This document shows positions 7,143 to 63,195 of a DNA stretch of 64,000 bases, in pieces (within the stretch, counting starts at the first letter, position 1; every line of letters starts with the position of its first letter). The notes beneath the pieces are model-generated. The model saw only the letters and a list, made by a program, of their open reading frames with translations, searched no databases and had not been told where the DNA came from. The DNA lies in IMG/VR virus record IMGVR_UViG_3300028394_002328, positions 186,001 through 250,000 of that record; one strand, written 5' to 3'. The translations under genes were made by a program, and so were the position numbers.

Positions 7143-7149
7143 TCTAACA

Positions 7150-8013: not shown

Positions 8014-8023
8014 GAATATAACA

Positions 8024-10084: not shown

Positions 10085-10094
10085 GGATAATATT

Positions 10095-11015: not shown

Positions 11016-11032
11016 AATAAGAGGAAAATAAA

Positions 11033-11389: not shown

Positions 11390-11400
11390 GGATAATAGAG

Positions 11401-13116: not shown

Positions 13117-13123
13117 ATATAAT

Positions 13124-14548
13124 ATGGGCATGACATTAACATCTGGACTATTAATAGGATCAGGAATAATTATTGAAGGGTTAACTGTACCTAATGCGCC
13201 CACTATTGGCACAGCAACGGCCACTGGTTCAACTACAGCAACAATATCTTTTACTGCACCTTCTTATAACGGTGGTGCATCTATCACTAGCTACACCGCA
13301 GTTAGTAGTCCAGGAAATATTACCGGTACATTAAGTCAAGCCGGTTCAGGCACTATTACTGTTACTGGACTATCCCAAAATACTAGTTATACATTTACTG
13401 TATATGCTACTAATAGAATTGGAAATAGCACAAACAGTAGCGCAAGCAATAGTATCACAACATTTACAGTACCTGGTGCACCTACTATTGGTACTGCTAC
13501 AACTACCGGTCCAACAACTGCTACAGTCACATTTACTGCACCTGCTAGTAATGGAGGTAGTACAATTACTAGTTATACAGCGGTTAGCAGCCCAGGAAAT
13601 ATTACCGGTACATTAAATCAAGCAGGTTCAGGTACAATTACAGTAAGTGGCTTAACCGCTAGTACTTCTTATACATTTACAGTGTACGCAACAAATGCCA
13701 TAGGTAATAGTGCTAATAGTAGTGCAAGTAATCAAATAACAACACAATCATCGACACCAACTTCAGTTGAATACTTGGTAGTTGCTGGTGGGGCAGGAGG
13801 TGGCGGAAATCATGGTGGTGGAGGCGGAGCCGGTGGTTATAGAACTTCAACTTTATCTGTTTCAGTATCTACCGCATATACTATAACAGTTGGCGCCGGT
13901 GGTGGGGCTAGTCAAATTGGTCAAAATTCCGTATTTTCTTCAATTACTGCTACAGGTGGGGGCTATGGAAGTACAGGTGGTGATGGATCATCTCCCCCAG
14001 CCGGAGGATCAGGTGGCGGTGGCAACGGCTACAACAATATAGTAGGTGGTGCCGGTAATACACCATCAACTTCTCCATCTCAAGGTAATAACGGCGGTAC
14101 AGGAGTTTATTATTATAACACTACTGGTGCTGGTGGTGGCGGAGCAGGTGCTGTCGGTGCAAACAGTGGTGACAATGTTGCTGGTGCAGGCGGTGCCGGT
14201 AGCGCATCATCTATTACTGGATCGTCAATTACTTATGCAGGTGGAGGTGGAGGTGGAGTTAGATTCTCTGGAACTGTTGGCGCTGGTGGTAGTGGTGGTG
14301 GAGGAGCAGGTGGAATAGAGTTTAACACTGGATCTGCTGGTACACCAAACACTGGTGGAGGTGGCGGAGGTGGCGGAGGCAATAATGGGGGCGGGGGTGC
14401 AGGTGGTTCTGGTATAGTTATTATTGCTTATCCTAATACATATACAGCGCCGGTATCAATATCTGGTGGTTTAACTTATGACCAACCCACTAGATCAGGT
14501 TATAGAGTGTATCGTTTCACACAAGGTACTGGTACTATTACTTGGTAA
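13124..14548 (+). CDS. two fibronectin type III domains plus glycine-rich domain
   Basis: Two PxAPTIGTAT...FTAP...ITSYTA...YTFTVYATN repeats, then VEYLVVAGG domain ending GTITW. Confidence 0.8.
   Translation: MGMTLTSGLLIGSGIIIEGLTVPNAPTIGTATATGSTTATISFTAPSYNGGASITSYTAVSSPGNITGTLSQAGSGTITVTGLSQNTSYTFTVYATNRIGNSTNSSASNSITTFTVPGAPTIGTATTTGPTTATVTFTAPASNGGSTITSYTAVSSPGNITGTLNQAGSGTITVSGLTASTSYTFTVYATNAIGNSANSSASNQITTQSSTPTSVEYLVVAGGAGGGGNHGGGGGAGGYRTSTLSVSVSTAYTITVGAGGGASQIGQNSVFSSITATGGGYGSTGGDGSSPPAGGSGGGGNGYNNIVGGAGNTPSTSPSQGNNGGTGVYYYNTTGAGGGGAGAVGANSGDNVAGAGGAGSASSITGSSITYAGGGGGGVRFSGTVGAGGSGGGGAGGIEFNTGSAGTPNTGGGGGGGGGNNGGGGAGGSGIVIIAYPNTYTAPVSISGGLTYDQPTRSGYRVYRFTQGTGTITW
13190..13745 (+). 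repeat. tandem duplication encoding two FN3 domains (~280 bp unit)
   Basis: Both copies share CCAGGAAATATTACCGGTACATTAA and most of the protein sequence; end points approximate. Confidence 0.8.
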
Positions 14549-14580
14549 AATAATAATCATCAGATGGAGTTAAATACAAT

Positions 14581-16575: not shown

Positions 16576-16651
16576 ATAATTAGTTCTTGGTAAACTAAGT
16601 ATCGTTCATAACAGGTTAAGATAAATACTTAATCTAGTACGGAATACTGTT

Positions 16652-20333: not shown

Positions 20334-20774
20334 ATGTTAGTAGATAATTTAAAAGTACTGTTAGCTAGTACACAAGCGTTTGCTATCAAGTCACAAAACT
20401 TTCATTGGAATGTTGAAGGCAGTAATTTCCCACAATATCACGAATTCTTTAATACATTATATGAAGATGTAAATGCTACCATAGATCCAATTGCCGAGTA
20501 TATTAGAATCCTAGGTCATTACACACCAGGCAGTTTATCTAGATATGCTGAATTAAGTATTATTCAAGACCAAACAAAGATTCCTCGTGCTCAATTAATG
20601 TTTGCTGAATTATTACAAGATTGTCACACATTAAGCCAATTAGTTGTTAATATGTTTGATGAAGCAACAAATGAGCGTCAACAAGGCATTGCTAATTACA
20701 TGGCTGAACTACAAGACTTGTATGGTAAAAAAGCTTGGTTTATTAATTCCACACTTAAAACTGAGCGTGAGTAA
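20334..20774 (+). CDS. dps: Dps/ferritin-like DNA protection protein
   Basis: NFHWNVEG.NF.QYHEFF..LYE...D.IAEYIR.LG is the Dps signature; ATG at 20334 preferred over TTG 20307. Confidence 0.88.
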   Translation: MLVDNLKVLLASTQAFAIKSQNFHWNVEGSNFPQYHEFFNTLYEDVNATIDPIAEYIRILGHYTPGSLSRYAELSIIQDQTKIPRAQLMFAELLQDCHTLSQLVVNMFDEATNERQQGIANYMAELQDLYGKKAWFINSTLKTERE

Positions 20775-21547
20775 TGAGACTTAATGAATTTGTGGTTGAC
20801 GAAGAAATAGTACAAGATGCTATTGTTAGAATACCACAGACTGAAATATTCAGTCAAGGTGATGATTATATCGGTCAATTAGAACGAGCGGCTAGCACAC
20901 AAATAAGTGCGATGTTTAAAAAGTTAAAGCCTGTACCTGATGATCAGGATTTAAGATATGGTATTATTCCAAAAGATGACGTTGGTCAATATCATGTTAT
21001 TATAGTTAATAACACTGATAGAATAATTGGTGACTTAGTATTATCTCCAGTAAAAGATTTTCCATTACAACCTGCATATACTGTAGAGTTCGTTACTGTC
21101 GCAGAAGAATATCGTGGCATGGGTGTCGGTAATCTATTATATAAGATAGCACTTAGAGATCAGGGAATACAATTAATAGCAGGCGAAAGCCAAACAGTAG
21201 GTGGTCGTAGAAATTGGATCAGTTTAAGTAAAACACCCGGTGTTATGATATCAGGGTGGGGTTGGGTCAATGTAAGTGAACAGGCTAATAGTAATCCTGA
21301 ACTAGTTAAAATTCAAAAGAAATTTGAAAAGTCAATGACAAAAGCAGGAGCAAAAAGTTTAGGTGTAAATAAAGGCCCTTCGAATACACTGTCTCGTGCG
21401 ATTAATAAACATTGGTATTTGTTCCCAGTACATGCTGGTGAAAAAGAATTTAAAGCAATCAATAACTCAATAAAGATTTATTATAATGATGTGTACAATC
21501 TTCCATTTTTATACAAGGTTGGATTGTTAGCAAATTGGGGTAATTAA
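20774..21547 (+). CDS. GNAT-like acetyltransferase domain protein
   Basis: VEFVTVAEEYRGMGVGNLLY motif A and QT.GG...W; MRLNEF start. Confidence 0.65.
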   Translation: MRLNEFVVDEEIVQDAIVRIPQTEIFSQGDDYIGQLERAASTQISAMFKKLKPVPDDQDLRYGIIPKDDVGQYHVIIVNNTDRIIGDLVLSPVKDFPLQPAYTVEFVTVAEEYRGMGVGNLLYKIALRDQGIQLIAGESQTVGGRRNWISLSKTPGVMISGWGWVNVSEQANSNPELVKIQKKFEKSMTKAGAKSLGVNKGPSNTLSRAINKHWYLFPVHAGEKEFKAINNSIKIYYNDVYNLPFLYKVGLLANWGN

Positions 21548-21559
21548 CTAAATAATAAT

Positions 21560-23290
21560 ATGAGAGCATTAGAATTTTTAAACGAAACCCAAGTCTTGGA
21601 CGAAATAGATATGAGTCCAAGCTCATTAAAGCAGTTAGCAGCAGGCACCGGTGCCATGGCAGGTATGGAATTTGAAATGTATGTGCCTGATGTTGCAGGA
21701 GGTGAAGATGAAGATTCAAGCCCAGAACCTGATTATGATGAAGATCAACCTGCAAGAAGTCTTGACCAAATATATGAATTTTTTGAAGCCGATGGTGAGT
21801 GGAATAGCCCATTTGAAGTTGGTAGATTACATAGCAAATTACAAGAAGAATATACAGAATGGGTAAGTGAAAAAATAAGTGAAGATTGGGATCATTCTCC
21901 AACCGAACATGTATATCAATGGGCAAAAGAAAATATTGAATATGAAGATAGAGATGAACTTGAAAAAATAGTTGAAAAGGCTGTAGAAGAAGGTCATGGT
22001 AATGAAATATATGATCAAGCGGATGAGGCTTTTAGAGAATCTATGCTTGAAGAATATATGAATGATGACTCAAATGAAAGAGAGTTTTTAAGAGATTCAG
22101 GCATTAGATTCATGAGTGATATTGAATCAGGCTATGACATTACTTGGCCATATTGGACATATCCAGAGGTTGGAGGTGAAAGAACTATAAAACAAGTTGC
22201 TTTACAGTTTATGACAGACTTAGGTCTTAACAACATAGCGGTAAGTGATAGTTACCACGGTTCTTATTATATGTCAAGCGGAGGCAACGATTGGACACCT
22301 ATTGGCCGTAGTAAACCAAATGATACTTACACTATAGAGCCAGATGGTAGTCTTACATCAAAGAAAGAACCCAGTGATTCAGGTTTAGAATTTGTAAGTA
22401 ATCCATTGCCCTTAGATGAAATGATCAATAGTTTAAATGAAGTAGTTCAATGGGCTAGAACAAATATTTGTTATACTAATAGAAGTACAGGTTTACACAT
22501 GAATGTAAGTGTACCTGGGTGCAGCCGTGAAAAATTAGACTATGTAAAACTTGCGCTATTATTAGGTGATGAATATGTATTAGACCAATTTGGTCGTTCA
22601 GCAAATAGTTTCGCAAAAAGTGCAATGAGTAGTTTACAGTCTAGAGCCACTTATATGCAAAGTGAACCGGAGTTACTTACCTTTTTTGATGAAATGAGAA
22701 AGGGTTTAAGTGTAGAGGCAGCAAAACTTATTCATAGTGGAAATACTAGCAAATATGTTAGTATTAATACTAAAGAGGGTTATATTGAATTTCGCAGCCC
22801 AGGTGGCGATTGGTTAAATGAAGATATACCTAAATTAGAAAATACACTATTAAGATTTGTAGTAGCATTAGATGCCGCTTGTGACCCACAAAAATATCGT
22901 ACAGAATATCTTAAAAAATTATATAAATTATTAAAACCTACAACTAAAGGCGATGCACTTGATGTTTTTGCCAAGTATTCATCTGGACAATTACAGAAAC
23001 AAGACTTAATAACTTTACTTAAAAGAGCAAGAGGTATACAAAAACCTATTCAGCCTATTCAAGCAAAAGTAAGTGCTGGCCCTGCTGAACCTGCATTTGG
23101 TCAACCACCAAGTAGGATGCCTGAATATCAAATTTATGACAGTAGAACTGGTGAAGAATATGAACTTTTTCAGGCATACGATGATGAAGCCGCGTTGAGT
23201 CGTTTAGATGATTATCGCCGCATGGCTAGAAATAGTGCTAGTTCGCTAGATCCTAATAGGTTTGTTCTCCGTCATGTGGTAAATGGATAA
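21560..23290 (+). CDS. putative amidoligase (COOH-NH2 ligase type)
   Basis: GMEFE, IEPDGSL, GLEFVS.P, STGLHMNVS, KYVSIN, IEFRSPG motifs; MRALEFLNE start. Confidence 0.75.
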   Translation: MRALEFLNETQVLDEIDMSPSSLKQLAAGTGAMAGMEFEMYVPDVAGGEDEDSSPEPDYDEDQPARSLDQIYEFFEADGEWNSPFEVGRLHSKLQEEYTEWVSEKISEDWDHSPTEHVYQWAKENIEYEDRDELEKIVEKAVEEGHGNEIYDQADEAFRESMLEEYMNDDSNEREFLRDSGIRFMSDIESGYDITWPYWTYPEVGGERTIKQVALQFMTDLGLNNIAVSDSYHGSYYMSSGGNDWTPIGRSKPNDTYTIEPDGSLTSKKEPSDSGLEFVSNPLPLDEMINSLNEVVQWARTNICYTNRSTGLHMNVSVPGCSREKLDYVKLALLLGDEYVLDQFGRSANSFAKSAMSSLQSRATYMQSEPELLTFFDEMRKGLSVEAAKLIHSGNTSKYVSINTKEGYIEFRSPGGDWLNEDIPKLENTLLRFVVALDAACDPQKYRTEYLKKLYKLLKPTTKGDALDVFAKYSSGQLQKQDLITLLKRARGIQKPIQPIQAKVSAGPAEPAFGQPPSRMPEYQIYDSRTGEEYELFQAYDDEAALSRLDDYRRMARNSASSLDPNRFVLRHVVNG

Positions 23291-23305
23291 CAAAAGGAGT
23301 ATATT

Positions 23306-23743
23306 ATGAAAAAAATTATAGCAATCGCATTATTGGTAATATCAACTACGGTTGACGCACAAAAAACACCACAAGGTGTTATATACGATTTCCCTATTAC
23401 TAGAGTATTAGATGGTGATACAGTAGCATTTCAGGCTACATTTTTACCACCTCCACTTAAACAAGAACTTAGTATAAGAGTATTTGGTGTAGATACTCCT
23501 GAAAAAGGATTTAGAGCCAAATGTCCACAAGAAGATCAAAGAGGACAGGCTGCTTCCGCATTTACAAAAGATTTAGTATCTCATGCACAAAAACGCCAAG
23601 TTGTTATCATGGACTGGGATAAATTTGGTGGGCGTGTATTAGGCGATGTAATCCTTGATGGTAAGAGTTTACGTGAACAACTTATTACAAATAATTATGC
23701 TAGAGCATACTTTGGCGAAGCAAAACAATCTTGGTGTAATTAA
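23306..23743 (+). CDS. staphylococcal nuclease-like (thermonuclease) with signal peptide
   Basis: RVLDGDT, IRVFGVDTPE, DKFGGRVLG motifs; MKKIIAIALLVISTTVDA signal peptide. Confidence 0.85.
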   Translation: MKKIIAIALLVISTTVDAQKTPQGVIYDFPITRVLDGDTVAFQATFLPPPLKQELSIRVFGVDTPEKGFRAKCPQEDQRGQAASAFTKDLVSHAQKRQVVIMDWDKFGGRVLGDVILDGKSLREQLITNNYARAYFGEAKQSWCN

Positions 23744-23748
23744 TATAA

Positions 23749-24324
23749 ATGATAACTGAATCATTCGTTGGTGAAACTGCGGTTATGGAGTTATATAAAA
23801 AACTCCCTGGCCTATCCAAACACAACTATAATACCATTGATAAATTAATGCGGATAATTGCACAAAAGCATGAACTTAGTAGTGATGCATTGAATGATTT
23901 ATTTGTGAAAAAATTTAATCGTAGTCCTGATAGTTGGGTTAAAGGAAAATTAGACGAATCTGATGTTGAATGTGATTTAGAACAAGAAGTAGAAAAGTTT
24001 GTAGATTGGGCTGCTAAAAAGTTGAATTTACAAACCACTCCCAAAATTGAACTAAGCATGGATACTGAAGAAGCACAAACTAATCATCATACTGGTAGCC
24101 ATACTGATGGTGATAACAGTGTTTGGGTATATGCTAAAAACCGTAATTTGGTTGACATACTAAGAACGGTATTTCACGAATTGGTTCATGTCAGACAAGG
24201 TGAATTGAATATGATTAAACCGGGATCTAGTTACCCTGGCAGCCCAATAGAAGTCATGGCAGATTGTTTAGCTGGCAAGTATATTAAGATATACGGTGAA
24301 AAGAATCACCATATTTTCCAATGA
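23749..24324 (+). CDS. zincin-like metallopeptidase domain protein
   Basis: RTVFHELVHVRQ (HExxH) with downstream E in SPIEV. Confidence 0.65.
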   Translation: MITESFVGETAVMELYKKLPGLSKHNYNTIDKLMRIIAQKHELSSDALNDLFVKKFNRSPDSWVKGKLDESDVECDLEQEVEKFVDWAAKKLNLQTTPKIELSMDTEEAQTNHHTGSHTDGDNSVWVYAKNRNLVDILRTVFHELVHVRQGELNMIKPGSSYPGSPIEVMADCLAGKYIKIYGEKNHHIFQ

Positions 24325-24725
24325 GACATTTTGAATTTATTACCGAACAGAAATCAATCACACAACATACCGAAGGTGGTTCGTTAGAAGGGTATGTTAT
24401 GTCTACAGATAAACCCAATATTAATAACTACTTACAAAGTCAAGGTGCAACACCTGAGTTAATAGACAATATCGCAAAACGGTATAAAACTTTGGGGTTA
24501 ATAAGAAACATGTATGTAGATGATGATTATCGTGGTCAAGGCATTGGTAATGATTTAGTAAGCAACGCAATTGATGATGCTGCTAATAACGGCGCAGAAG
24601 CCATTATATTAATCTCAGATACCGACGAAGATAACCCATTTGATTTAACAAAATGGTATGAGGGTTTTGGGTTTGAAGTAGTGGGTACGGCGGGTAATAA
24701 CCCTGTAATGATACTTGATCTTTAA
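24321..24725 (+). CDS. GNAT family acetyltransferase
   Basis: MYVDDDYRGQGIG motif A and L..WYEGFGF motif B; MRHFEFITE start. Confidence 0.8.
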   Translation: MRHFEFITEQKSITQHTEGGSLEGYVMSTDKPNINNYLQSQGATPELIDNIAKRYKTLGLIRNMYVDDDYRGQGIGNDLVSNAIDDAANNGAEAIILISDTDEDNPFDLTKWYEGFGFEVVGTAGNNPVMILDL

Positions 24726-33837: not shown

Positions 33838-34512
33838 ATGTCGTACAATAAAACCAAAACAGATCCTGAACTAGGACTATTAGTACATGAATATCTAGTA
33901 AAGATGGGAGTTGAAACTCCTGTTATTTCAAACGGTATTGATCGTAAAGAAAAGATTGATAAAATTGAGAATCATTTTCGTGAGATTATGGGGATTCTCG
34001 GCCTAGACTTAACTGATGATAGTCTAATAGAAACACCTAACCGTGTTGCTAAAATGTATGTAAATGAAATTTTTTGGGGACTCGATTTTGAAGCATTCCC
34101 AAAATGTACTACAGTAGACAATAAAATGCACTATAATGAAATGGTGGTTGAACGTAATATCAACGTTCAAAGTAACTGCGAACATCATTTTGTAATCATT
34201 GATGGATTAGCAACTGTAGCATATGTACCAAAAAGAAAGGTATTAGGTCTAAGTAAAATTAATCGCATTGTAGAATACTTTAGCAAGCGCCCACAAATTC
34301 AAGAACGGTTGACTGAACAGATTTTCTATGCACTACAATTTATCCTTGAAACAAATGATGTTGCGGTTATGATTGATGCCCAACATTATTGTGTCAAAAG
34401 CCGAGGTGTAGAAGATACAGGTAGTAGTACTGTTACTACTAGGCTTGGCGGTGGATTCAAATCTGATCCTGAAGTTCGTAATGAATTTTATCAGATTGCA
34501 AGGATGCGTTAA
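33838..34512 (+). CDS. folE: GTP cyclohydrolase I
   Basis: ETPNRVAKMY, SNCEHHF, GLSKINRIV, RPQIQERLT, HYCVKSRG; GGAGG SD before ATG 33838. Confidence 0.95.
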   Translation: MSYNKTKTDPELGLLVHEYLVKMGVETPVISNGIDRKEKIDKIENHFREIMGILGLDLTDDSLIETPNRVAKMYVNEIFWGLDFEAFPKCTTVDNKMHYNEMVVERNINVQSNCEHHFVIIDGLATVAYVPKRKVLGLSKINRIVEYFSKRPQIQERLTEQIFYALQFILETNDVAVMIDAQHYCVKSRGVEDTGSSTVTTRLGGGFKSDPEVRNEFYQIARMR

Positions 34513-34637
34513 TGTTAACTATATTGACCTTGATTGTAATTGTTGCTATAACTTATATTATGTTTTTTAAAACTACAATCAATAGTAATTGCAATGGAAA
34601 TTGCAATCAAGGTCGCAACTGTACATGTAAGGTATAA
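34512..34637 (+). CDS. 41 aa membrane-anchored Cys-rich peptide (…CNGNCNQGRNCTC), not in the ORF track
   Basis: TAATG coupling to folE; hydrophobic N-terminus and four Cys. Confidence 0.6.
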   Translation: MLTILTLIVIVAITYIMFFKTTINSNCNGNCNQGRNCTCKV

Positions 34638-34639
34638 AG

Positions 34640-34876
34640 ATGGGATTTAAAAAACCATTAGAATTAAGTACAGTCGTTTATCAGATTAGCGCGGCTGGAA
34701 GAGAACTAACTAGTCCATATAACGATGGATTTACACAATGGGAAATCAAAAAAGAATTATATTACATTAAGTTTCTTTTAGATGATATAATTGAACGATC
34801 TGGTACGTTTAATGGCGAAGAGGAATTCTTAAAAGAAGAATCTCAAAAAAGAATGATCAACATACTAAAAAGGTAA
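34640..34876 (+). CDS. hypothetical protein
   Basis: 78 aa ORF in operon. Confidence 0.65.
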   Translation: MGFKKPLELSTVVYQISAAGRELTSPYNDGFTQWEIKKELYYIKFLLDDIIERSGTFNGEEEFLKEESQKRMINILKR

Positions 34877-34880
34877 TAAA

Positions 34881-35084
34881 ATGAAAGAATTTGTGCTTAA
34901 AGATATGAATCAATACACAGTTAGAGTTAAGAAAAATAGGTGTTTGAGACCACAAGAGTTGACTCATATTGAGTTTATCCAAGAAAGTAAAAACGATAAA
35001 GGTGAAGTAGTAGATACTTCAACCTATCAATTTTTCTTAACTGACAGTGAAATTAAAACTCTAGTAGCCAATTTGGTTGAATAA
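34881..35084 (+). CDS. hypothetical protein
   Basis: 67 aa ORF in operon. Confidence 0.6.
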   Translation: MKEFVLKDMNQYTVRVKKNRCLRPQELTHIEFIQESKNDKGEVVDTSTYQFFLTDSEIKTLVANLVE

Positions 35085-35085
35085 T

Positions 35086-35631
35086 ATGGCTAAGTTTTAT
35101 TCAACCAAAACTTATGGTAATGACAGAGGATTAAGTTGTTGTTTTAGACAATGGCGAGCTAAACACAGTCATTGTAGTACATTACATGGATACAGTATTG
35201 GTATTAAATTAGTATTTGAATGCGAAACATTGGATGACAAAAACTGGTGTATGGACTTTGGTGGACTAAAAGAATTCAAAGCATGGGCTGATTATATGTT
35301 TGACCATACACTAATTATTGCTGAAGATGATCCTCATCTAGAATTTTTCAAGCAAATGGCATTGATTGACACAAACTGGACTTTGCCCGAAACCGGTCCA
35401 GATGAAATGCGAGTTGATAGAAATAATTTCGAGCCATACCAAAGAGGCTCTCTATGTGATTTACGCATTGTAGAAGGTGTAGGTTGTGAGATGTTTGCTA
35501 AAATGGCATATGACAAAATGGCTGAGTTGTTAGACGGTGGTAATATGCGATATCCCATTAACCCTAATGTAAGAATTAAAAGCGCCGAGGTTTTCGAGCA
35601 TGGAGCCAACTCAGCTACCTACGAGGGTTAA
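35086..35631 (+). CDS. queD: 6-carboxy-5,6,7,8-tetrahydropterin synthase QueD
   Basis: SHCSTLHGYS, MDFGGLK, FDHT, GCEMFA, VFEHGANSA. Confidence 0.88.
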   Translation: MAKFYSTKTYGNDRGLSCCFRQWRAKHSHCSTLHGYSIGIKLVFECETLDDKNWCMDFGGLKEFKAWADYMFDHTLIIAEDDPHLEFFKQMALIDTNWTLPETGPDEMRVDRNNFEPYQRGSLCDLRIVEGVGCEMFAKMAYDKMAELLDGGNMRYPINPNVRIKSAEVFEHGANSATYEG

Positions 35632-35782
35632 ACTTTGGCGATTATGGAGCAAGGCATTGGGAGAAAAGTCCGGTGCCACGGATCAAGAAAGTGACCTAAT
35701 AGCTTTGGTTAGAACTTGTATTGTGATATCATATATAATTACAAATATGTTTATCATAGCAGGGATTATACGACATTGGTAA
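35600..35782 (+). CDS. small membrane protein
   Basis: WRLWSKALGEK...D.IALVRT followed by a hydrophobic helix. Confidence 0.55.
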   Translation: MEPTQLPTRVKLWRLWSKALGEKSGATDQESDLIALVRTCIVISYIITNMFIIAGIIRHW

Positions 35783-35800
35783 TTAATTTAGGAATTTAAA

Positions 35801-35989
35801 ATGAGTGATGTTAGAAATCGCATGGCAGAATTAATGGAACCTATTGACAAGCAAATTATGATGTGCGATAATAGGGAAGATTTGCTAATGTTAGCCTGTG
35901 CTATGTTGACTTCAGTTAAAACGATATTTGACCAAGAGTTAGGTAAAAAAGCCCGTATCCAATTATTTAAAGATTATATAGATGAGTAA
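35801..35989 (+). CDS. hypothetical protein
   Basis: 62 aa ORF with AGGA SD. Confidence 0.6.
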   Translation: MSDVRNRMAELMEPIDKQIMMCDNREDLLMLACAMLTSVKTIFDQELGKKARIQLFKDYIDE

Positions 35990-36833
35990 TATTAAGATAA
36001 GCGAACTGTTCTATTCCATACAAGGAGAAGGTCGTTATATGGGGGTGCCTAGTGTGTTCCTTCGCACATTTGGCTGTAATTTTACCTGTGATGGTTTTGG
36101 TATGCCACGCGGAGGAACAAGTATTGAACGAATTCAAGTTGGATTGTTACATGAAGGAAATCCTTATAAAAATTATAAAGATTTGCCCCTTGTAAGTACA
36201 GGTTGTGACAGTTATGCAAGTTGGGATCCAGCATTTAAAGATTTGAGTCCTGTACTTACTACTGATGCTATCGTTAATCGCATTATGGAAATTCTTCCAT
36301 ATAATGAATGGCGTGATGAACATTTGGTTATTACAGGTGGAGAACCATTGCTAGGTTGGCAAAAACAATATCCTGATCTATTAAATCATCTTAAAATGCA
36401 TGGTTTAAAAGAAATTACTTTTGAAACAAATGGTACTCAAAAACTAACTTCAGAATTTAAATCAGCATTAAAAGAATGGAGCAAATGGTACAATAGAGAA
36501 ATTACATTTAGTGTTAGTGCCAAACTGCCTTGTAGCGGTGAAATATGGGAAGATGCTATTAAACCTAAGGTAGTATGTGAATATGAACAATATGGCACTT
36601 CCTATCTAAAGTTTGTTATTGCTACAGAACAAGATTTTGCTGATGCCAAAAATGCTATTGCTGAATTTCGTGGTGCAGGATTTAAAGGACATGTATATCT
36701 AATGCCAATTGGTGGTGTGGAAAGTATTTACTCTATGAATAATAAAAATGTAGCCATGCTAGCAATGAAGCATGGACTAAGATACAGCGATAGACTCCAG
36801 GTACCTCTGTTCAAAAACGAATGGGGTACTTGA
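35982..36833 (+). CDS. queE: 7-carboxy-7-deazaguanine synthase QueE (radical SAM)
   Basis: ISELFYSIQGEG, FLRTFGCNFTC...CDS, VITGGEP, FETNG, SVSAKL, RLQVPLF. Confidence 0.92.
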   Translation: MSNIKISELFYSIQGEGRYMGVPSVFLRTFGCNFTCDGFGMPRGGTSIERIQVGLLHEGNPYKNYKDLPLVSTGCDSYASWDPAFKDLSPVLTTDAIVNRIMEILPYNEWRDEHLVITGGEPLLGWQKQYPDLLNHLKMHGLKEITFETNGTQKLTSEFKSALKEWSKWYNREITFSVSAKLPCSGEIWEDAIKPKVVCEYEQYGTSYLKFVIATEQDFADAKNAIAEFRGAGFKGHVYLMPIGGVESIYSMNNKNVAMLAMKHGLRYSDRLQVPLFKNEWGT

Positions 36834-38173
36834 TGAGGACGTATGATAAACGAATTGGTTTTTTAGTTAGTTTCCAAACACTAGTACCTCATGGTGGTAT
36901 AGGACAATTCGCTAAAAGTTTCTGCGAATTGATGGATAGTCATAATATTAAAGTTGATATTATTACTGACAAAGAACCAAAAAATAATGAGTTTGTAAAC
37001 TCATTAAAAGCAAATATTGTTTATCCTACTGAGTCATTCACATACACAGATCATAGTAATATCTTTATGTATGGTGATACCTTTTGCTATGAACGAATGG
37101 CTAACTTTCGCAACGCAATAATTAAAGCCACAACCAATAACCTATATGACGCATTAATTTGTAACACATATGAAACTATACAAGTTGCTAGTACAATGGG
37201 TCTTGAAGATGTAATTCAAATCATTGCCTATACTCATTTAGAAAGTCAAATCTTTAAGGATACTAAAAATCCTTTCTTACATAGTACCAATGAAATGATG
37301 CGTAATCAATTAGAAATGAATGGATTGTATGTAGGAACACAAAGCAAATTCAATCAAATTTCAATGAGCAATAGCGCATGGCATCTACCTATTCCAATTA
37401 CTGAGCGTGGGTTACTAGAAGAACATCATAAACCACGTGAAGGTGTATTGTTTATTGGTCGTTGGGAAGAAGGTAAAAATCCCGAAACATATTTAGAGTT
37501 GATTGAAAAAACTAAGTTACCTGCGAGGGTAATGACTAATGCCAATGGTGCAAAAAAGTTTGAAGAACGCTTTAAAAAGATAGGCGTAACTGATTATAAA
37601 ATTGCTGTTAGTATTATTGGTAAAGAAAAAGTAGATTTCATTACTAGTTGTAGAGTAGCATTCAATCCTAGTACAGTAGAAAGTTATGGTATGGCTTTCT
37701 ATGAGCAACATATTCAATTACCTACAGTTGTTTTAGAAAATCAACGTTGGACTAATAACTTTGATAAAAATCATTTCTTTACTGTAAATAAAAAGAACAT
37801 GGTTGAAACTGTATTAGATTTATACAACAATGTTCCTGATGCTAAAACATGGTATGCTAATAATATATTAGAAGTATATCAGAGTAAAGAGAATGATGTA
37901 TTTCACAAATGGAATGAATGTTTTAACAAGTTTACTAGTAAACAATCAAACAGTAATACCGCAAAAATATGTGAAGAAACTACTGTAAAGTATATTGATT
38001 TTACTAATAGTTTAGGTCGTAGATTATTGTGTATTGACGATATTAAATCTGTATTGACAAACAAACATAAATTCCGTATAATATACACAGATAATGATAC
38101 ATACTTATCTAAAGATCCAACATTTGAACCAGTAGAGGAAGTAACAGGCTTAAGCCTATTTGAAGGATTATGA
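36833..38173 (+). CDS. GT-B fold (GT4-like) glycosyltransferase
   Basis: PHGGIGQF N-terminal loop, LFIGRWEEGKNP, PSTVESYGMAFYE; TGATG coupling to queE. Confidence 0.78.
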   Translation: MRTYDKRIGFLVSFQTLVPHGGIGQFAKSFCELMDSHNIKVDIITDKEPKNNEFVNSLKANIVYPTESFTYTDHSNIFMYGDTFCYERMANFRNAIIKATTNNLYDALICNTYETIQVASTMGLEDVIQIIAYTHLESQIFKDTKNPFLHSTNEMMRNQLEMNGLYVGTQSKFNQISMSNSAWHLPIPITERGLLEEHHKPREGVLFIGRWEEGKNPETYLELIEKTKLPARVMTNANGAKKFEERFKKIGVTDYKIAVSIIGKEKVDFITSCRVAFNPSTVESYGMAFYEQHIQLPTVVLENQRWTNNFDKNHFFTVNKKNMVETVLDLYNNVPDAKTWYANNILEVYQSKENDVFHKWNECFNKFTSKQSNSNTAKICEETTVKYIDFTNSLGRRLLCIDDIKSVLTNKHKFRIIYTDNDTYLSKDPTFEPVEEVTGLSLFEGL

Positions 38174-38988
38174 AAAAAGTATTAATAACAGGTAGTTCAG
38201 GATACATTGGCAGTCATCTTACTAATCTATTAAAAGATGAATATGAAGTACATGGACTTGATCGTGTTGAACCACAAGTAGCACCACATACATTTTATCA
38301 TTGTGACATTAACCGTCAGTTTAACTTAGATGAAGAGTTTGATGCTGTAGTACATTTAGCCGCTCTAGTTAATGTAGGAGAAAGTGAAAAGCAACCTATT
38401 CAATACTACATTACTAACCTAAATGGTACTATGAATGTAGTTAATAAGATAAAAACTAAAAACTTTATTTTTTCTAGTACCGGTGCTGCACAAGACTGTA
38501 TAAGTGCATATGGTATTAGTAAGCGAGCGGCAGAAGATGTAGTAAGGTCGTATTCTGAAATGGTTAGTATGGACTATACTATCTTTAGATTTTATAATGT
38601 CATTGGTAGCACAGTAGTTAATCCTACTAACCCAGATGGGTTATTTTACAATTTAATTAAAGCTCGGGCGACTGGTCAATTTACTATACATGGTAGTGAT
38701 TATAATACTAGTGATGGCACTTGTGTTAGAGATTATGTTCATGTAGATGAGATTTGTAATTCTATTAAATTGGCAATTGAACGGCCAGCAAATCAAACAG
38801 AAGCATTAGGTCATGGTAAAGGATATACTGTTAAAGAAATGGTAACTATCTTTGAAAGTATTAATAATTGTAAAATCAATGTGAAGACAGGCCCTCGTAG
38901 AAAGGGTGATATTGAACATTATGTACTTAAGAACCCATCATCTTACATGCATGAGTTGTATAATATTGGTCAACTACTAAAGATTTAA
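38170..38988 (+). CDS. NAD-dependent nucleotide-sugar epimerase (GalE-like SDR)
   Basis: ITGSSGYIG, HLAALVNVGES, FSST, YGISK (YxxxK), FRFYNV, DGTCVRDYVHV. Confidence 0.88.
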   Translation: MKKVLITGSSGYIGSHLTNLLKDEYEVHGLDRVEPQVAPHTFYHCDINRQFNLDEEFDAVVHLAALVNVGESEKQPIQYYITNLNGTMNVVNKIKTKNFIFSSTGAAQDCISAYGISKRAAEDVVRSYSEMVSMDYTIFRFYNVIGSTVVNPTNPDGLFYNLIKARATGQFTIHGSDYNTSDGTCVRDYVHVDEICNSIKLAIERPANQTEALGHGKGYTVKEMVTIFESINNCKINVKTGPRRKGDIEHYVLKNPSSYMHELYNIGQLLKI

Positions 38989-38990
38989 AT

Positions 38991-40349
38991 TTACTTTAAA
39001 CCTGCACTGACCCAAGGATCAGCAATTACTAGAGTATCATCTCTCTGCATTACATTGCTATAATCATGTGCGATAATATCATTACTAAATCCTAATTTAG
39101 TACCGGTTGCTGTAACTGATTTAAGTGTTTTATAGAAATTAGTATATTGACGATATTGCGGATCTAATGGACTGCCTTCGTCAATACTATACATCATATC
39201 TATAATCATTTCATCATAGTCAGGATCTAATTCTTCTAATCGTTCCATAACTACCTGATCAAACTTTTCAACTCCCAATTGAATTGGTTGTTTAGTAGTT
39301 TCTATAAACTTAGGTAAGTGTGGGTTATTAGCATTTTTCTCGCAATAATTAAGAAATGCTAAGAATGGATTTTTAGCGGTAGAGATATCGCCATTCTCAG
39401 GTATTAATACTTTAATTACTGGACCTTCTTCTTTAGCAAAAACATGTGCGTCTGTACCATGACCGATATAACTATAGCCTAATTTATTCATATAATCATT
39501 AAGCATGTTGACATGTTTATTATAGTCAAACTCGGTTAATTCTTGCTCTTCAATTTTTCTAGCAACGATACCTTTATTCTTTATTAATTTCTCTTCATCC
39601 CACCTAACTGGGTTAATCATTGGATACAAGTATTTGGTATCGGTGGCTCCGATATCAAACAGACTTCTCGGTGGAACTAGATGTTGTTTTCTAAGTTTAT
39701 CAAACTTTTCAGCATCTACTACTATTGGTTCCCCAATAGTTACTTGACCAATCGCAACTGCAGGGCCATTACCAGTTCTAACAATACCAACCGTTCTACC
39801 AACATATGGTCTAAGACTGTCAGTTTTTCTAGATTCGTATTTCTTTTTGCCGTCAACAATTAAACTAGCATAGTCAGTATTGCCATCACTTCTGACATTG
39901 ATGCCAATAGTTGGTTTATTGTCTGTATTTTCTGTTATATTTTTTTCTGATGGCTTGACAATCTCTGCACTTGATAAATCTAATGGTCCTGCTATCCAAT
40001 ACTCATCAATATCATCAGATTCATACTTCCACGCATTAGGATCATAGTTAGCACTAGTCATACCCTTTGTTCGCATAAAAGTTTTATGTCCTGGTATTGG
40101 ATATATTTTATTAGATATTTTACTAGCATTAATTCTAATTAATGTATCTCCTGTCCATCTACTAATATGTTCTTTATCAGTAAAACTATTACCGGGTATC
40201 ATTTTCCCTTCTGATTCTATATAGTGAGCATAACCTCTTTTCACTGGTAATTTTTTAGAATCAATATACTTTTGAAATTGATTTCCTTCTACCCACTTAT
40301 ATAGATAGGTGGGTACTTGAACTGATTCTAATAACTCTTTAATACGCAT
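38991..40349 (-). CDS. tripartite protein: ART-like domain + ASCH domain + Ser/Thr kinase-like domain
   Basis: LYK...GNSFT...DEY (ART-like, weak); GINV...LIVDGKKKYESR...AIGQV (ASCH); IGHGTDAHVF, VIK, MERL, HDYSNVM, VIADP (kinase); MRIKELLE start. Confidence 0.65.
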   Translation of the reverse strand: MRIKELLESVQVPTYLYKWVEGNQFQKYIDSKKLPVKRGYAHYIESEGKMIPGNSFTDKEHISRWTGDTLIRINASKISNKIYPIPGHKTFMRTKGMTSANYDPNAWKYESDDIDEYWIAGPLDLSSAEIVKPSEKNITENTDNKPTIGINVRSDGNTDYASLIVDGKKKYESRKTDSLRPYVGRTVGIVRTGNGPAVAIGQVTIGEPIVVDAEKFDKLRKQHLVPPRSLFDIGATDTKYLYPMINPVRWDEEKLIKNKGIVARKIEEQELTEFDYNKHVNMLNDYMNKLGYSYIGHGTDAHVFAKEEGPVIKVLIPENGDISTAKNPFLAFLNYCEKNANNPHLPKFIETTKQPIQLGVEKFDQVVMERLEELDPDYDEMIIDMMYSIDEGSPLDPQYRQYTNFYKTLKSVTATGTKLGFSNDIIAHDYSNVMQRDDTLVIADPWVSAGLK

Positions 40350-41950
40350 TAATGCTTCAATAATAGAGTGCCTAATACACCAGGGTCATTTGCCGTTAAA
40401 TCAGGCTCCCCGGGGGCAACAATAACATTCCACTTCATGGATTTATTATTTTTACCCTTAGTATTCCATTCATCATAACTTAGAATACTATTTTTGCTTA
40501 TACCATACTTATCGGCGAGGCGCTGTTTTAGTTCAGGTAATTCATCAGGTATTACTTGCCATTGACCTTCAGGTCCTTTAACTAAATTCTTTTTAGAATC
40601 CTTAACTAATAGGTCATAAAACAAACTACTAGGAACGATACGACTATTCTTAGTTGTGTCTAAGTTTGGATCATTTCTCTTAATTTGTTTTTCTTGGCTA
40701 GTACTTGCGCCTTCACTCCAATTAATAATAAAGTTGCTAGGCTTACTAGCCATTGCAGCCTTTGCTACTTTAGTATAAGCATAAAACTTAACATCAGGTA
40801 ATGAGTTTGCAAGGTCAAATGCCATGTCCATATACTCAGGGCTAAAGAAGTCTCCAGCATCATGCCAACGAATACTTACTGAATAACCACCTTTTTTACC
40901 CTTTGCTTCTTCTTTACTAATTTCTTGTGTTAGTTGTTCAAAGAACTCATCAGGATGATTTAGTAGATATGTAAGTATACGACCATCGCTTAACCACGGA
41001 CCAGCGAATTGAACTTTACCGCCCTTCATAGCAAAGCAATCTACTTTACAACTACCAGCACCTGGACATGTATTAACAACAATTAACTCATTTGTATTTT
41101 CATCTAGTGCGATACCAACTAGAGCAGCAAATCCAATGTTAAAAAATTGTTCTTGTGCTCCATCACTATGCTTCATCTTCTCATTCTTTTTAAGAAGTGA
41201 TTTTGGTCTTTCCTTTAACCCTGCTTTAATAGCGTCAGTATTATATTTTTTACCGTCAGCATTATAGTATCCAACTACTGAACTACGATGGACATAAGGT
41301 AAATTATATTTGTCTGTTTTCTTCTTTTCTTGATTACGAATACGGTCTAGATAATCTGTTAACTCTTGACCTTTTAATTCACGGGTGCTAGCAGGTAGTG
41401 CTGTTGCTTCCGCCACACCTTGTTCGTGTAGTTTTTTGTTAGGATCTCTAACATCAGGAAAATCCCATTTATTGGTTTGTGAAAATTCTTCTCTAGCTTC
41501 TCTTCTAGACATGCCATATATTTTTTCAAATTCTCGATCAGATAATTCAGGATCATCAAGGTCCATGTCTAACTCAGCCATCTTGCTTTCCGACACATTA
41601 ACTACGGGTTTATTTCCGTAAACTTTTCTATCTTTACCTATTATTCTTCCGGTTTCGCTTCTACTACCAATGTGCTTACTGGCTAAACTTTGACCAGGTT
41701 TTACTCTTACACGATTTGGCGGTAATTGTGTAATCTTTCCACCTTTATTTAAAAAGTCTGCTACAGCATCATCGGTTTCTTTACTAAAATCAGATTTCAT
41801 CTTGAAATCTTCATCTACTTCCTGTTCGGGTTCAGGTTCCTCACCTTGTGCGGATTTAGCAATAAATTGCTGAGGGGTCATTATTTGGATACCTTCAGGA
41901 GCACCTGGTAATTCTGGTTCAACTCCCTCAAATAATTCTTTAATATTCAT
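40349..41950 (-). CDS. modular protein with C-terminal GP88-like (radical SAM-like) domain
   Basis: TCPGAGSCKVDCFA, IRWHDAGDF, FYAYTK; MNIKELFE start and QGVAE linker. Confidence 0.65.
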   Translation of the reverse strand: MNIKELFEGVEPELPGAPEGIQIMTPQQFIAKSAQGEEPEPEQEVDEDFKMKSDFSKETDDAVADFLNKGGKITQLPPNRVRVKPGQSLASKHIGSRSETGRIIGKDRKVYGNKPVVNVSESKMAELDMDLDDPELSDREFEKIYGMSRREAREEFSQTNKWDFPDVRDPNKKLHEQGVAEATALPASTRELKGQELTDYLDRIRNQEKKKTDKYNLPYVHRSSVVGYYNADGKKYNTDAIKAGLKERPKSLLKKNEKMKHSDGAQEQFFNIGFAALVGIALDENTNELIVVNTCPGAGSCKVDCFAMKGGKVQFAGPWLSDGRILTYLLNHPDEFFEQLTQEISKEEAKGKKGGYSVSIRWHDAGDFFSPEYMDMAFDLANSLPDVKFYAYTKVAKAAMASKPSNFIINWSEGASTSQEKQIKRNDPNLDTTKNSRIVPSSLFYDLLVKDSKKNLVKGPEGQWQVIPDELPELKQRLADKYGISKNSILSYDEWNTKGKNNKSMKWNVIVAPGEPDLTANDPGVLGTLLLKH

Positions 41951-41999: not shown

Positions 42000-42031
42000 A
42001 CATAGACTATTTATCACTTTGGACTTTTAAC

Positions 42032-57565: not shown

Positions 57566-58765
57566 ATGACCTTAGAAAATAAAATCACCCACTGCACTTT
57601 TTGTGGAAGCCACAAAGAAGTTGTAAAAAAGTTAATTGTCAGCGAATCGGTTGCAATTTGCAGTGATTGCATTGAACTATGTAATCAACTAATCAATGAT
57701 GATTCTTCAGTTGAATCTGAAAAAATAGAACATCAAACCTATGATGCTATTCAAATTAAAGAGTATTTGGATCAGCATATCATAGGACAAGCTGATGCTA
57801 AAATGATTCTCAGTGTTGCTATAGCAAATCACTTTAAACGAATTACACATCCTCCTGAAGATTTAGAAATCCAAAAGGGAAATGTGTTACTAATTGGTCC
57901 TACTGGATCAGGTAAAACGTTACTAGCAAAAACTGTAGCAAAGTTTTTGAATGTACCATTTGTAGTTGCTGATGCTACATCATTAACAGAAGCAGGTTAC
58001 GTTGGTGATGATGTTGAAAGTATGATTAGTATGTTAGTTAATTCAGCCGGCGGTGATGTTAAAAAAGCAGAACGCGGTATTGTATTCATTGACGAAATTG
58101 ATAAGATTGCCCGTAAAGGTGAATCTACTAGCATTACCCGTGATGTATCGGGGGAAGGTGTTCAACAAGCACTACTTAAATTAGTAGAGGGTACTATATG
58201 TCGTATTCCTGCAGGTGGTGGTAGAAAACATCCCGGTGGTGATATGTTAGAAGTTAATACTAAAAACATTTTATTCATTTCAGGTGGTGCATTTGTAGGC
58301 CTATATGATATTATTAAATCAAGGGTCAAGGGCACTAGAATTGGTTTCGGTGCTAATGTTATTGCCAACCATGAAGATATTGAACTAAATTTAGTTTCGC
58401 CCGATGATTTAACTAAGTTTGGAATGATTCCTGAGTTCATTGGTAGATTTACTACATCAGTTGTTCTAACTGATTTAGATAGGGATGAACTACTTAAGGT
58501 ATTAACAGAAATCAAAAATAACTATATAAACCAATACCAATATCTATTTTCACTAGATAATATTGATTTGAATTTTGATACCGAAGCATTAGAGCAAATA
58601 GTAGATAATTGCCTAGAACTTAAAACAGGTGCTCGTGGTCTACATACTGAAATTGAACGGTGCTTAATGCCACATATGTATAATGCTCGCAAATACCATG
58701 ATCATGGTATAACCGTGATAAATATTAGTCAGGACATGGTGATTAATCCACAACCATTAGTATGA
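57566..58765 (+). CDS. clpX: ATP-dependent Clp protease ATP-binding subunit ClpX
   Basis: C4 zinc finger (CTFC...CSDC), GPTGSGKT, TEAGYVGDDVE, FIDEIDK, RDVSGEGVQQALLK, GARGL. Confidence 0.95.
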   Translation: MTLENKITHCTFCGSHKEVVKKLIVSESVAICSDCIELCNQLINDDSSVESEKIEHQTYDAIQIKEYLDQHIIGQADAKMILSVAIANHFKRITHPPEDLEIQKGNVLLIGPTGSGKTLLAKTVAKFLNVPFVVADATSLTEAGYVGDDVESMISMLVNSAGGDVKKAERGIVFIDEIDKIARKGESTSITRDVSGEGVQQALLKLVEGTICRIPAGGGRKHPGGDMLEVNTKNILFISGGAFVGLYDIIKSRVKGTRIGFGANVIANHEDIELNLVSPDDLTKFGMIPEFIGRFTTSVVLTDLDRDELLKVLTEIKNNYINQYQYLFSLDNIDLNFDTEALEQIVDNCLELKTGARGLHTEIERCLMPHMYNARKYHDHGITVINISQDMVINPQPLV

Positions 58766-58983
58766 GTTCAAAGGGCAGAAAAGTATTAGTACAAGACGGT
58801 AATGTAGAAAAGGCGCTAAGAAAATTTAAAAAGAAAATTAGCGAAGATGGCCTGCTCCAAGAAGTTCAAGACCGTAGATTTTATAATAAGCCAACCGAAA
58901 AAAGAAAAGTTGCTAAAGCCCAAGCAAAGAAACGTTGGAAAAGATTTTTAAATAGTCAAGAAATTCCTAAGAAACTTTTTTAA
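58762..58983 (+). CDS. rpsU: 30S ribosomal protein bS21
   Basis: V.V.DGNVEKALRKFKKK...GLLQE...RRFY.KPTEKRK. Confidence 0.9.
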   Translation: MSSKGRKVLVQDGNVEKALRKFKKKISEDGLLQEVQDRRFYNKPTEKRKVAKAQAKKRWKRFLNSQEIPKKLF

Positions 58984-62604: not shown

Positions 62605-63195
62605 ATGAGTTTAGTCCCAATTGTACTTGAGCAAACATCCCGCGGCGAACGCAGTTATGATATCTATAGTCGGCTGTTGCGTGACCGTGTAATTCTCCTA
62701 GAAGGGGAAGTTCATGACCAAATGGCAAATCTGATTGTTGCTCAATTACTTTACCTTGAAAGTGAAGATAGCAATAAGGATATTAATCTTTACATTAACT
62801 CACCGGGTGGATCAGTTACCGCAGGTATGGCTATCTATGATACTATTCAATTTATTACACCTGATGTTTCAACCATTGTTATGGGACAGGCATGTAGTAT
62901 GGGTAGTTTGTTAGCACAAGCAGGTGCTAAAAATAAACGGTTGATTTTACCTAATGCTCGCCATATGATTCATCAACCAAGCGGTGGTGCACGTGGTCAG
63001 GCTACTGATATGGAAATTCAAGTAAAAGAAATCCTTGAAATGAAGCGTAATCTTACCAACATCTATGTTAAACACAATTCAAAGGGAAAGACTTTTGAGG
63101 AGTTGACTAGGGATATGGAACGAGACCGATTCATGTCCGGTGAAGAAGCGGTTGAGTATGGACTAGCCGACCGTATCATTGACAAGCGGCCGTAA
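62605..63195 (+). CDS. clpP: ATP-dependent Clp protease proteolytic subunit ClpP
   Basis: [33 protein letters not shown] (Ser), MIHQPSGG (His), ERD.FM (Asp). Confidence 0.96.

Follow-up and report, generated by a model that had tools for sequence, protein, structure and literature searches.

A putative capsid-delivered polyvalent effector with ADP-ribosyltransferase-like, ASCH and kinase modules in a freshwater jumbo phage

An analysis of 64,000 nucleotides (nt) of the IMG/VR virus record IMGVR_UViG_3300028394_002328 (its positions 186,001 to 250,000, hereafter the window) reveals that the open reading frame (ORF) at 38991..40349 on the minus strand, which encodes 452 amino acids (aa) and begins MRIKELLE, is a polyvalent protein sensu Iyer et al., in which a modelled ADP-ribosyltransferase (ART) superfamily fold, an ASCH module and a minimal T7-type kinase follow one another with a short linker at each border. 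It departs from the polyvalent proteins described so far in that ASCH is present, in that there is no peptidase acting in cis, and in the combination of leaders resembling the T4 capsid-targeting sequence (CTS) with prohead-protease-type sites that double as DNA joints. We put at slightly better than even the chance that the protein is the precursor of a polyvalent effector delivered by the capsid of a T4-like freshwater jumbo myovirus; packaging, cleavage, ejection, catalytic activity and targets are what we infer within that reading.

Three independently distributed modules

The source record is a single contig of 335,035 bp (37% GC, CheckV completeness 95%) from a freshwater jumbo phage. 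The ORF is intact under genetic code table 11 and identical on two further IMG/VR contigs, and at least five freshwater metagenomes hold at least 95% of the sampled words of its stretch. Homologues numbered 156 in a word-indexed search and 718 in an exhaustive HMMER search, and from IMG/VR we fetched 80 of 253 matching loci. Given the homologues, the identical copies and the recurrence in metagenomes, the ORF is a real, recurrent gene and not a chance frame. Neither megablast of the locus nor tblastn of the protein against 50,697 phage records gave a match. The features that the initial annotation had listed are all present in this one ORF: besides the MRIKELLE start, these are LYK (L16-K18), SFT (S55-T57), DEY (D115-Y117), KNITE (136-140), QELTE (269-273), the Gly-loop in IGHGTDAHVF (294-303), VIK (311-313), AHDYSNVM (427-434) and IADP in IADPW (442-446).

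When the relatives were mapped onto the query, it fell into three separately distributed pieces, with homology breaking at residues 132-138 and 262-273, where the KNITE and QELTE linkers lie. Residues 1-134 are rare (eight proteins found), residues ~135-268 occur in more than 100 proteins of widely differing architectures, including giants of up to 3,916 aa, and residues ~262-450 occur beside other N- and C-terminal partners. Identity of the middle (ASCH) module among close relatives is 70-85%. The modules are found alone or fused with GNAT, nucleotidyltransferase (NTase), ParB, chitinase, CCA-adding enzyme or GP88. Many relatives terminate at '...VARKID', the end of the middle module just before linker 2, and kinase-only relatives begin directly after a QGVAE or QDVAE junction. 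Up to six junctions are present in some relatives, and in one of them (L021) a Pol-beta NTase domain (866-943) occupies exactly the 102-aa segment between the junctions at 846 and 948. Each module thus occurs independently and the breakpoints fall at the linkers, as expected of separate modules and not of the one interdependent fold that the initial annotation had set against its own proposal. Polyvalent proteins are characterized by mosaic architectures with at least two conflict-type effector domains on a single phage or plasmid polypeptide, and this is the arrangement observed. Pfam and PHROG scans found no peptidase family in the ORF or in the gene upstream.

Module 1 (residues 9-135; 39945..40325, minus strand) has a minimal-size ART superfamily fold according to AlphaFold2 (AF2) modelling and structure searches. 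The AF2 model, built from an 8-sequence alignment, has a predicted local distance difference test (pLDDT) score of 85.9 and a predicted template modelling (pTM) score of 0.80; leader residues 1-6 are disordered in it, as are linker residues 137-142 (pLDDT <50). Foldseek against the PDB returned nothing below E 0.1, and its list consisted mostly of ART folds (AvrPphF, DarT, pertussis S1, PltA, Arr, Tpt1, TreTu and Scabin). In an all-against-all VIA comparison the top 50 matches all belonged to the ART superfamily, the best being the NAD+ lobe of Tpt1/KptA (Z 8.0 and 7.2), CC0527 (7.2), DarT (6.1) and diphtheria toxin (6.0). Cluster matches in AFDB, likewise mostly ARTs, included Tox-ART-HYD1, DarT and PARP, and a language-model feature search (Atlas) gave PARP and Arr. 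The ART call, which had been rated weak, therefore holds at the level of the modelled fold, with scores that are moderate (TM about 0.45-0.54). Across the 8-member family LYK, SFT and DEY are invariant, and the invariant residues are K18, H42, S55, T57, D58, D115 and E116. Elsewhere the module is partnered with a HIGH-type nucleotidyltransferase and with the head domain of a CCA-adding enzyme. Sequence kinship with T4 Alt was found neither in the whole-ORF PHROG scan, which gave the kinase family only, nor by tblastn against the 50,697 phage records. A Tpt1/KptA-like segment of 119 aa in another relative (L031) was considered as kin of module 1 and rejected, since BLASTP and hhalign show no relation.

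Module 2 (residues 141-268; 39546..39929, minus strand) is an ASCH (PUA-like) domain, PF04266. The isolated module scores 21.7 bits against a gathering cut-off of 21.2, whereas the whole ORF scores 19.5, below the cut-off; the same family matches 24/24 sampled relatives (best E 1.8e-8). The GxKxxExR signature (G167/K169/E172/R174) is invariant in 24 sequences. A profile of the family retrieves the Thermus ASCH structures 1wk2 and 2dp9, and the signature aligns to GRKVWEIR of 1wk2. These matches bear out the initial assignment of ASCH. Known activities of ASCH proteins include that of the N4-acetylcytidine (ac4C) amidohydrolase YqfB, with a Lys21-Thr24-Arg26 register and a Thr nucleophile (PMC6972931), the removal of ac4C from tRNA (bioRxiv 10.64898/2026.02.27.708502) and a single-stranded RNA ribonuclease (PMC5615036). 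In a register taken from the motif, not from a direct YqfB alignment, the position of the YqfB Thr nucleophile is Glu172 here, so by this measure module 2 does not qualify as a YqfB-type enzyme.

Module 3 (residues 274-452; 38994..39530, minus strand) is a T7 gp0.7-like kinase without a C-lobe past the DFG-equivalent. With its AF2 model (pLDDT 89.9) Foldseek retrieved 35 PDB kinases and aminoglycoside phosphotransferases (APHs) at E <= 1e-3 and probability 1.0, and the VIA alignment spans the N-lobe to the DFG region (e.g. MPS1 516-668) with Z up to 8.8. The T7 gp0.7 kinase family phrog_15752 was found at E 8.8e-7, with 18/19 family members matching, and G296-x-G298, K313, E369, D424, N432 and D444 are invariant or nearly so. 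Structure, profile and catalytic residues agree on a kinase, as had been proposed. Pfam on 19 kinase-family members gave no kinase family and the family profile against PDB sequences gave insignificant matches only, including an APH at E 0.64, so structure prediction was needed to recognize the fold. The 'HD' (H428-D429) that had been taken for a kinase motif has to be given up: it is not conserved, and the invariant catalytic-loop Asp is D424 in N-D-I-I, alongside N432 and D444. The protein stops 8 residues past D444, and the complete C-lobe (activation segment, alphaF to alphaI) is absent, in agreement with the polyvalent-protein kinases lacking the whole C-terminal subdomain that were described by Iyer et al. 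(PMC5512222). The T7 kinase disarms several defence systems and is a broad anti-defence enzyme (PMC13645617).

Linkers, leaders and the head protease

Three short segments are predicted to be cut. The leader MRIKELLE (residues 1-8; 40326..40349, minus strand) is T4 CTS-like and ends L-L-E, with a predicted cut before S9 that would expose SVQVP; linker 1 is K-N-I-T-E (residues 136-140; 39930..39944, minus strand), and linker 2 is Q-E-L-T-E (residues 269-273; 39531..39545, minus strand), preceded by I-E-E (266-268). To judge from these sequences, internal cuts would probably give the predicted neo-N-termini NTDNKPTIGINVR (NTDNK, after E140) and FDYNK (after E273).

The sequence flanking ASCH in the relatives is nearly always Q-(G/D/N)-(V/I/L/M)-(A/T/W)-E, with the consensus (K/E)-Q-G-V-A-E↓G-(S/A)-S (arrow, predicted cut). 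The strict motif Q-x-[VILM]-x-E precedes 84/196 internal ASCH modules. Among close relatives, taken as those with an ASCH module at least 75% identical, [VILM]-x-E is present at 16/16 unique internal junctions, in a constant register that lies 6-9 residues ahead of the domain core, against 28% in a null of random windows from the same proteins; in distant relatives, the giant class-B polyvalent proteins, its frequency is at the null level. The ITE and LTE sites that had been noticed between the modules fit this lineage-wide rule and are the same tripeptides as those cut in T4 Alt. Genome-wide there are 10 copies of the strict junction motif where 2.85 would be expected, three of them in an 836-aa ORF and one in the GP88 gene upstream of the target. 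A literature search for 'QGVAE' returned alpha-synuclein papers only, and no description of this linker and leader system was found in the searchable literature, which leaves room for a description elsewhere.

At the very point where the fused versions carry QGVAE↓G, stand-alone modules have their start, which reads MRIQEVE↓G, MRASEFIVE↓N or MRIKEIIAE. Nine ORFs in the genome begin with the leader class consensus MRxxE(F/L)xxE, against 0.26 +/- 0.5 expected; GNATs, an amidoligase and a RyR-domain protein are among them, and the island genes of relatives start with the same type of leader. By its sequence the leader is of the kind seen in T4 internal proteins, an N-terminal propeptide of ~6-20 aa ending (L/I)-x-E.

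The phage genome encodes, at C1:326839-327471 on the minus strand, a protease of the T4 gp21 family (Peptidase_S77, PF03420, 98 bits) within a head gene order that is T4-like: portal, small core proteins, protease, scaffold and a Gp23-type major capsid protein (MCP, 324 bits). The scaffold contains 28 [VILM]-x-E sites against 12.6 +/- 2.8, which is above all 1,000 composition-preserving shuffles and five times the proteome rate, as would be expected if the protease has a T4-like specificity. In T4, gp21 has cleavage sites at ITE-6 and LTE-619 of Alt, an ART that is ejected (PMC5694885), and it strips CTS propeptides from internal proteins, a processing that depends on propeptide positions 8 and 10 (PMC9026906). 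The predicted complex of the gp21-type protease with residues 122-158 scored 0.00 and carries no weight either way. A full-length ClpP (62605..63195, plus strand; PF00574, 270 bits) is encoded besides the gp21-type protease, as a second candidate processing protease. The nearest cultured phages by MCP are Vibrio phage 2.275.O (67%), PA5oct (66%) and the Rak2-like coliphages, and the head module is common to them.

The QGVAE linker is conserved not only as peptide but as DNA, CAAGGTGTGGCGGAA (CAA GGT GTG GCG GAA) being found in 23 unique instances. Its codons are rare ones, with Val encoded by GTG in 19/21 cases (background 12%) and Ala by GCG in 21/22 (background 8%). Such conservation is not explicable by selection on the peptide and points to recombination or gene conversion between linkers. 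Eight of the 16 close-relative junctions, both target linkers among them, depart from the DNA consensus at 4 nt or more, yet keep a hydrophobic residue at P3 and Glu at P1, so a constraint at the peptide level also acts. The linkers probably serve both purposes, as recombination joint and as protease site. It is possible, though we would place it somewhat short of an even chance, that the ~15-nt joint CAAGGTGTGGCGGAA, encoding QGVAE↓G and interchangeable with a capsid-targeting leader, constitutes a combinatorial cassette system of this freshwater jumbo-phage lineage. The junction DNA is not found in Vibrio phage 2.275.O, and its one occurrence in PA5oct, within a 119-aa hypothetical gene, is probably due to chance.

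Variants at the locus were detected in one metagenome (DNA run X5). In ~10% of depth (40349 / 39961), a module-1-like end is joined to the ORF start via a 23-nt insert with ATAAATA, and in ~33% of depth 229 nt at 41593..41823, in the N-terminal part of the GP88 gene, are replaced by 7 nt (in frame, 74 codons). Both look like ongoing rearrangement at the level of modules.

Other carriers of these signals lie elsewhere in the genome. A second polyprotein of the same system (17780..20290, plus strand; the 836-aa ORF mentioned above) contains QGVAEG twice, QGISE once and a GNAT module, and it is followed by a cluster of leader-bearing effectors (20774..24725, plus strand) that start MRLNEFVVDE (GNAT), MRALEFLNE (amidoligase) and MRHFEFITE (GNAT). 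Outside the window, two adjoining small ORFs (C1:74969..75729) have the near-identical leaders MRAREFITEA and MRAHEFLTES.

Operon and genomic setting

The gene upstream of the target (40349..41950, minus strand; 533 aa) encodes a GP88 domain (Pfam, 93 bits); the protein opens with the leader MNIKELFE↓G, has an N-terminal module and carries EQGVAE↓A at residue 177. The stop codon of this gene overlaps the target start as TAATG, which couples the two genes. Residues 60-79, in the N-terminal module of the GP88 protein, give a weak match to the SutA RNA polymerase-binding family (PF20661, E 1.2e-4, below cut-off), a possible RNA polymerase-binding effector. The T4-late-promoter-like motif GATAAATA lies at 42008..42015 (minus strand), 57 nt upstream of the first ATG of the operon, and is kept at the same place upstream of the island in two relatives (L003 and L006). 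In an unbiased k-mer analysis the T4 late promoter core ATAAATA was the most enriched upstream 7-mer (43/157 upstream regions, ~19-fold); it stands in front of the portal gene and one head-core gene, and likewise of many very large genes of structural type and several with leaders. The exact TATAAATA occurs at 2 sites against 9.4 expected, none of them near the operon, and a scan of the locus for sigma-70 promoters and terminators gave nothing above shuffled background. The minus-strand late unit of the initial annotation is therefore borne out in part only, by the conserved GATAAATA upstream of the operon and not by an exact TATAAATA, and from these motifs late expression is plausible.

Between the conserved UvdE and epimerase genes, relatives differ in the leader-bearing genes and modules that they carry. 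The window has GP88 followed by ART-ASCH-kinase; L003 has DUF6321, GP88 and ASCH-kinase; and L006 has DUF6321, a secreted nuclease, GP88 with three junctions, a 56-aa ORF and X-ASCH. The nuclease of L006 (4600..5421) is an Endonuclease_NS gene with a signal-peptide-like N-terminus and is the sole island gene without a leader. At 33838..38988 (plus strand), a 7-deazaguanine synthesis cluster (GTP cyclohydrolase I, PTPS/QueD and a QueE-like radical SAM protein) comes first, then a glycosyltransferase-like gene and one for an NAD-dependent sugar epimerase. These genes suggest hypermodified DNA, and the cluster is syntenic in L003 and L006.

Farther away, ribosomal protein bS21 is encoded at 58762..58983 (plus strand; PF01165, E 2.6e-16) and does not adjoin the head genes, unlike in the published freshwater bS21 phage clade, where it lies beside them (PMC9723584); because of this difference in placement the expression data of that clade were not transferred to this genome. 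A GC-rich block at 6001..16600 (plus strand; 43-48% vs ~35% elsewhere) encodes a series of fibre-like proteins that resemble one another at the N-terminus, one of which (664 aa) has three Laminin_G_3 domains and matches baseplate-wedge and virion PHROGs. Throughout the genome, upstream regions are enriched in Shine-Dalgarno words of the AAGGAG type and in TTGACA; the Shine-Dalgarno enrichment suggests a host with Shine-Dalgarno-led initiation, more like Proteobacteria than Bacteroidota.

A proposed mechanism and its alternatives

In the mechanism that we favor, a late-type promoter would drive the GP88 gene and the target ORF as one transcript, and the leader MRIKELLE of the target would direct the precursor into the scaffolding core of the prohead, like the T4 CTS. 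The gp21-type protease would then cut after Glu at exposed [VILM]-x-E sites, namely LLE-8, ITE-140 and LTE-273 (or IEE-268 and LTE-273), freeing three small enzymes that would remain inside the capsid and be carried into the cell along with the DNA. Module 1 would be an NAD+-using enzyme from the DarT/Tpt1/PARP side of the ART superfamily, the ASCH (PUA-like) module would bind or hydrolyse RNA or modified nucleosides, and module 3 would be a minimal gp0.7-like Ser/Thr kinase; once delivered, these enzymes may modify targets of the host at the very start of infection, in host take-over and anti-defence. The linkers would double as recombination joints, the homogenization of their DNA across genes and genomes allowing modules to be swapped as cassettes. 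The injected three-enzyme cassette that the initial annotation had predicted is thus supported in large part, though not in full.

Several observations count against this mechanism. The conservation of the linker as DNA explains part of the motif conservation without any selection for a protease site. Further [VILM]-x-E tripeptides lie inside the folded modules, so that selective cutting requires an argument from accessibility. The invariant residues of module 1 could not be mapped onto a canonical ART triad (H-Y-E/D/Q or R-S-E); candidates are K18 (LYKWV), H42, S55/T57 (NSFTD) and E116 (DEYW), though it would be unusual for Lys to take the place of H/R. Vibrio phage 2.275.O and PA5oct have neither the QGVAE system nor these modules, so that no experimental model can be transferred from the nearest cultured relatives. 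GATAAATA lies 57 nt from the ATG, when most instances of ATAAATA are 4-25 nt away, and three lake metatranscriptomes were too sparse to use: they gave a handful of short contigs for the GP88 gene and a single contig, of 204 nt, for the target, all of which might stem from DNA carry-over.

A rival reading is that of a multi-domain enzyme made after infection, active in the cytoplasm and never packaged, whose linkers are mere recombination joints and whose N-terminal likeness to other proteins reflects shared 5' gene ends or a translation-initiation sequence. The nucleotide-level conservation of QGVAE with rare codons in 23 unique instances, the varying content of the UvdE-epimerase island among close relatives, and the DNA-run variants, with a joint at the gene start and in-frame replacements at module scale, are all compatible with it, and T7 gp0.7 is itself an early, non-packaged kinase. 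We consider this reading unlikely, because a joint maintained at the DNA level alone does not predict a [VILM] residue at P3 and Glu at P1 in the DNA-divergent junctions (8/8), nor leaders ending in the same tripeptide, nor the enrichment of that tripeptide in the scaffold, nor the late-type motif upstream. Alternatively, the protein might be packaged and ejected with its leader trimmed and its ITE and LTE linkers uncut. A single enzyme with three functions would then act in the host, in the way proposed for classical polyvalent proteins that have no peptidase of their own. T4 gp21 trims only the ends of Alt, the giant class-B polyvalent proteins with the same ASCH module are mostly without the junction motif, and Iyer et al. 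(2017) assign processing to MPTase domains in cis, none of which is present here. What makes an uncut protein decidedly unlikely in our judgment is that the junctions share the P3/P1 signature of the leaders at every module border in the lineage, that the linkers are disordered and exposed in the model, and that leader-bearing stand-alone modules begin at exactly the residue that cleavage would expose.

The catalytic nature of the cargo is a separate matter. Module 1, ASCH or both could be non-catalytic binding or decoy domains, for example an adaptor that holds cargo on modified phage DNA, leaving the kinase as the sole enzyme. Consistent with this are the lack of an assigned canonical ART triad, the 'LYK' strand having Lys in place of the expected H or R, the Glu at the position of the YqfB Thr nucleophile, the fact that ASCH is by far the most widely shared module, and the 7-deazaguanine and sugar modifications that the phage is predicted to make. 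The polar residues invariant in module 1 (K18, H42, S55, T57, D58, D115, E116) and the full GxKxxExR of ASCH form a pattern that is typical of active sites, and the fusion of one module-1 relative to a HIGH-type nucleotidyltransferase is compatible with a supply of NAD+; the non-catalytic reading is accordingly the one to which we attach very little probability.

Set beside known systems, the proposed effector precursor combines traits of several. The polyvalent proteins of Iyer, Burroughs, Anand, de Souza and Aravind (2017; PMC5512222) likewise have several conflict-type enzyme domains per phage polypeptide, domain mosaicism and a proposed delivery with the DNA, and the repertoires overlap in ART and in a kinase without the C-terminal subdomain, with GNAT, Pol-beta NTase and ParB as partners in relatives. 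That paper has 0 occurrences of ASCH, which the target contains, and ascribes processing to MPTase or other in-protein peptidases, whereas the target has no peptidase domain; the target differs further by a T4 prohead-protease-type site at every border, a T4 CTS-like leader and a DNA-conserved linker. With Alt and the internal proteins of T4 it shares a short propeptide ending (L/I)-x-E, and its genome, like that of T4, has a gp21-family protease and head genes in the T4 order; the ITE-6 and LTE-619 at which Alt, a packaged and ejected ART, is cut are tripeptides equal to those of the two linkers of the target. No sequence homology of the target to Alt or the internal proteins was detected, and its leader differs from the T4 CTS in having 8 residues and its own consensus, MRxxE(F/L)xxE. 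The T4 proteins are trimmed at their ends only, whereas the target would be split into several enzymes, a fate for which we know of no example among T4 proteins. The likeness to T7 gp0.7 is a profile-level homology of the kinase core, in which the Gly-loop, the Lys, the catalytic D...N and the metal-binding D are kept; the target kinase is only ~180 aa long, has no gp0.7 C-terminal transcription shut-off domain and is fused behind other modules, and whereas gp0.7 is expressed early, the target kinase is, on present sequence evidence, probably expressed late and packaged. In polymorphic toxin systems (Rhs/CdiA) a short conserved pre-toxin motif borders recombining enzymatic cassettes and coincides with a processing site. 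This is an analogy only, since those are secreted bacterial toxins with different motifs and with immunity genes.

If the cassette reading is true, flanking any effector domain with a pair of linkers would be enough to have it packaged, released by cleavage and injected. This would be a counterpart, in phages, of the cassette exchange of polymorphic toxins, and unlike the cis-peptidase processing proposed for classical polyvalent proteins. If the mechanism as a whole is true, two short signals and an ordinary head protease would suffice to load the capsid with an arbitrary and fast-changing set of enzymes, and the long-standing question of how polyvalent proteins are processed would become directly testable, with three predicted neo-N-termini and one protease. 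It would also make available for anti-defence screening several hundred effector modules with natural boundaries, many without a known family and each already cut at its true domain border, and it would suggest a rule, found in nature, by which protein delivery with T4-like capsids could be designed. For the phage itself, ART-ASCH-kinase would unite NAD+-dependent, RNA- or modified-base-directed and phosphorylation-based manipulation of the host in one delivered package.

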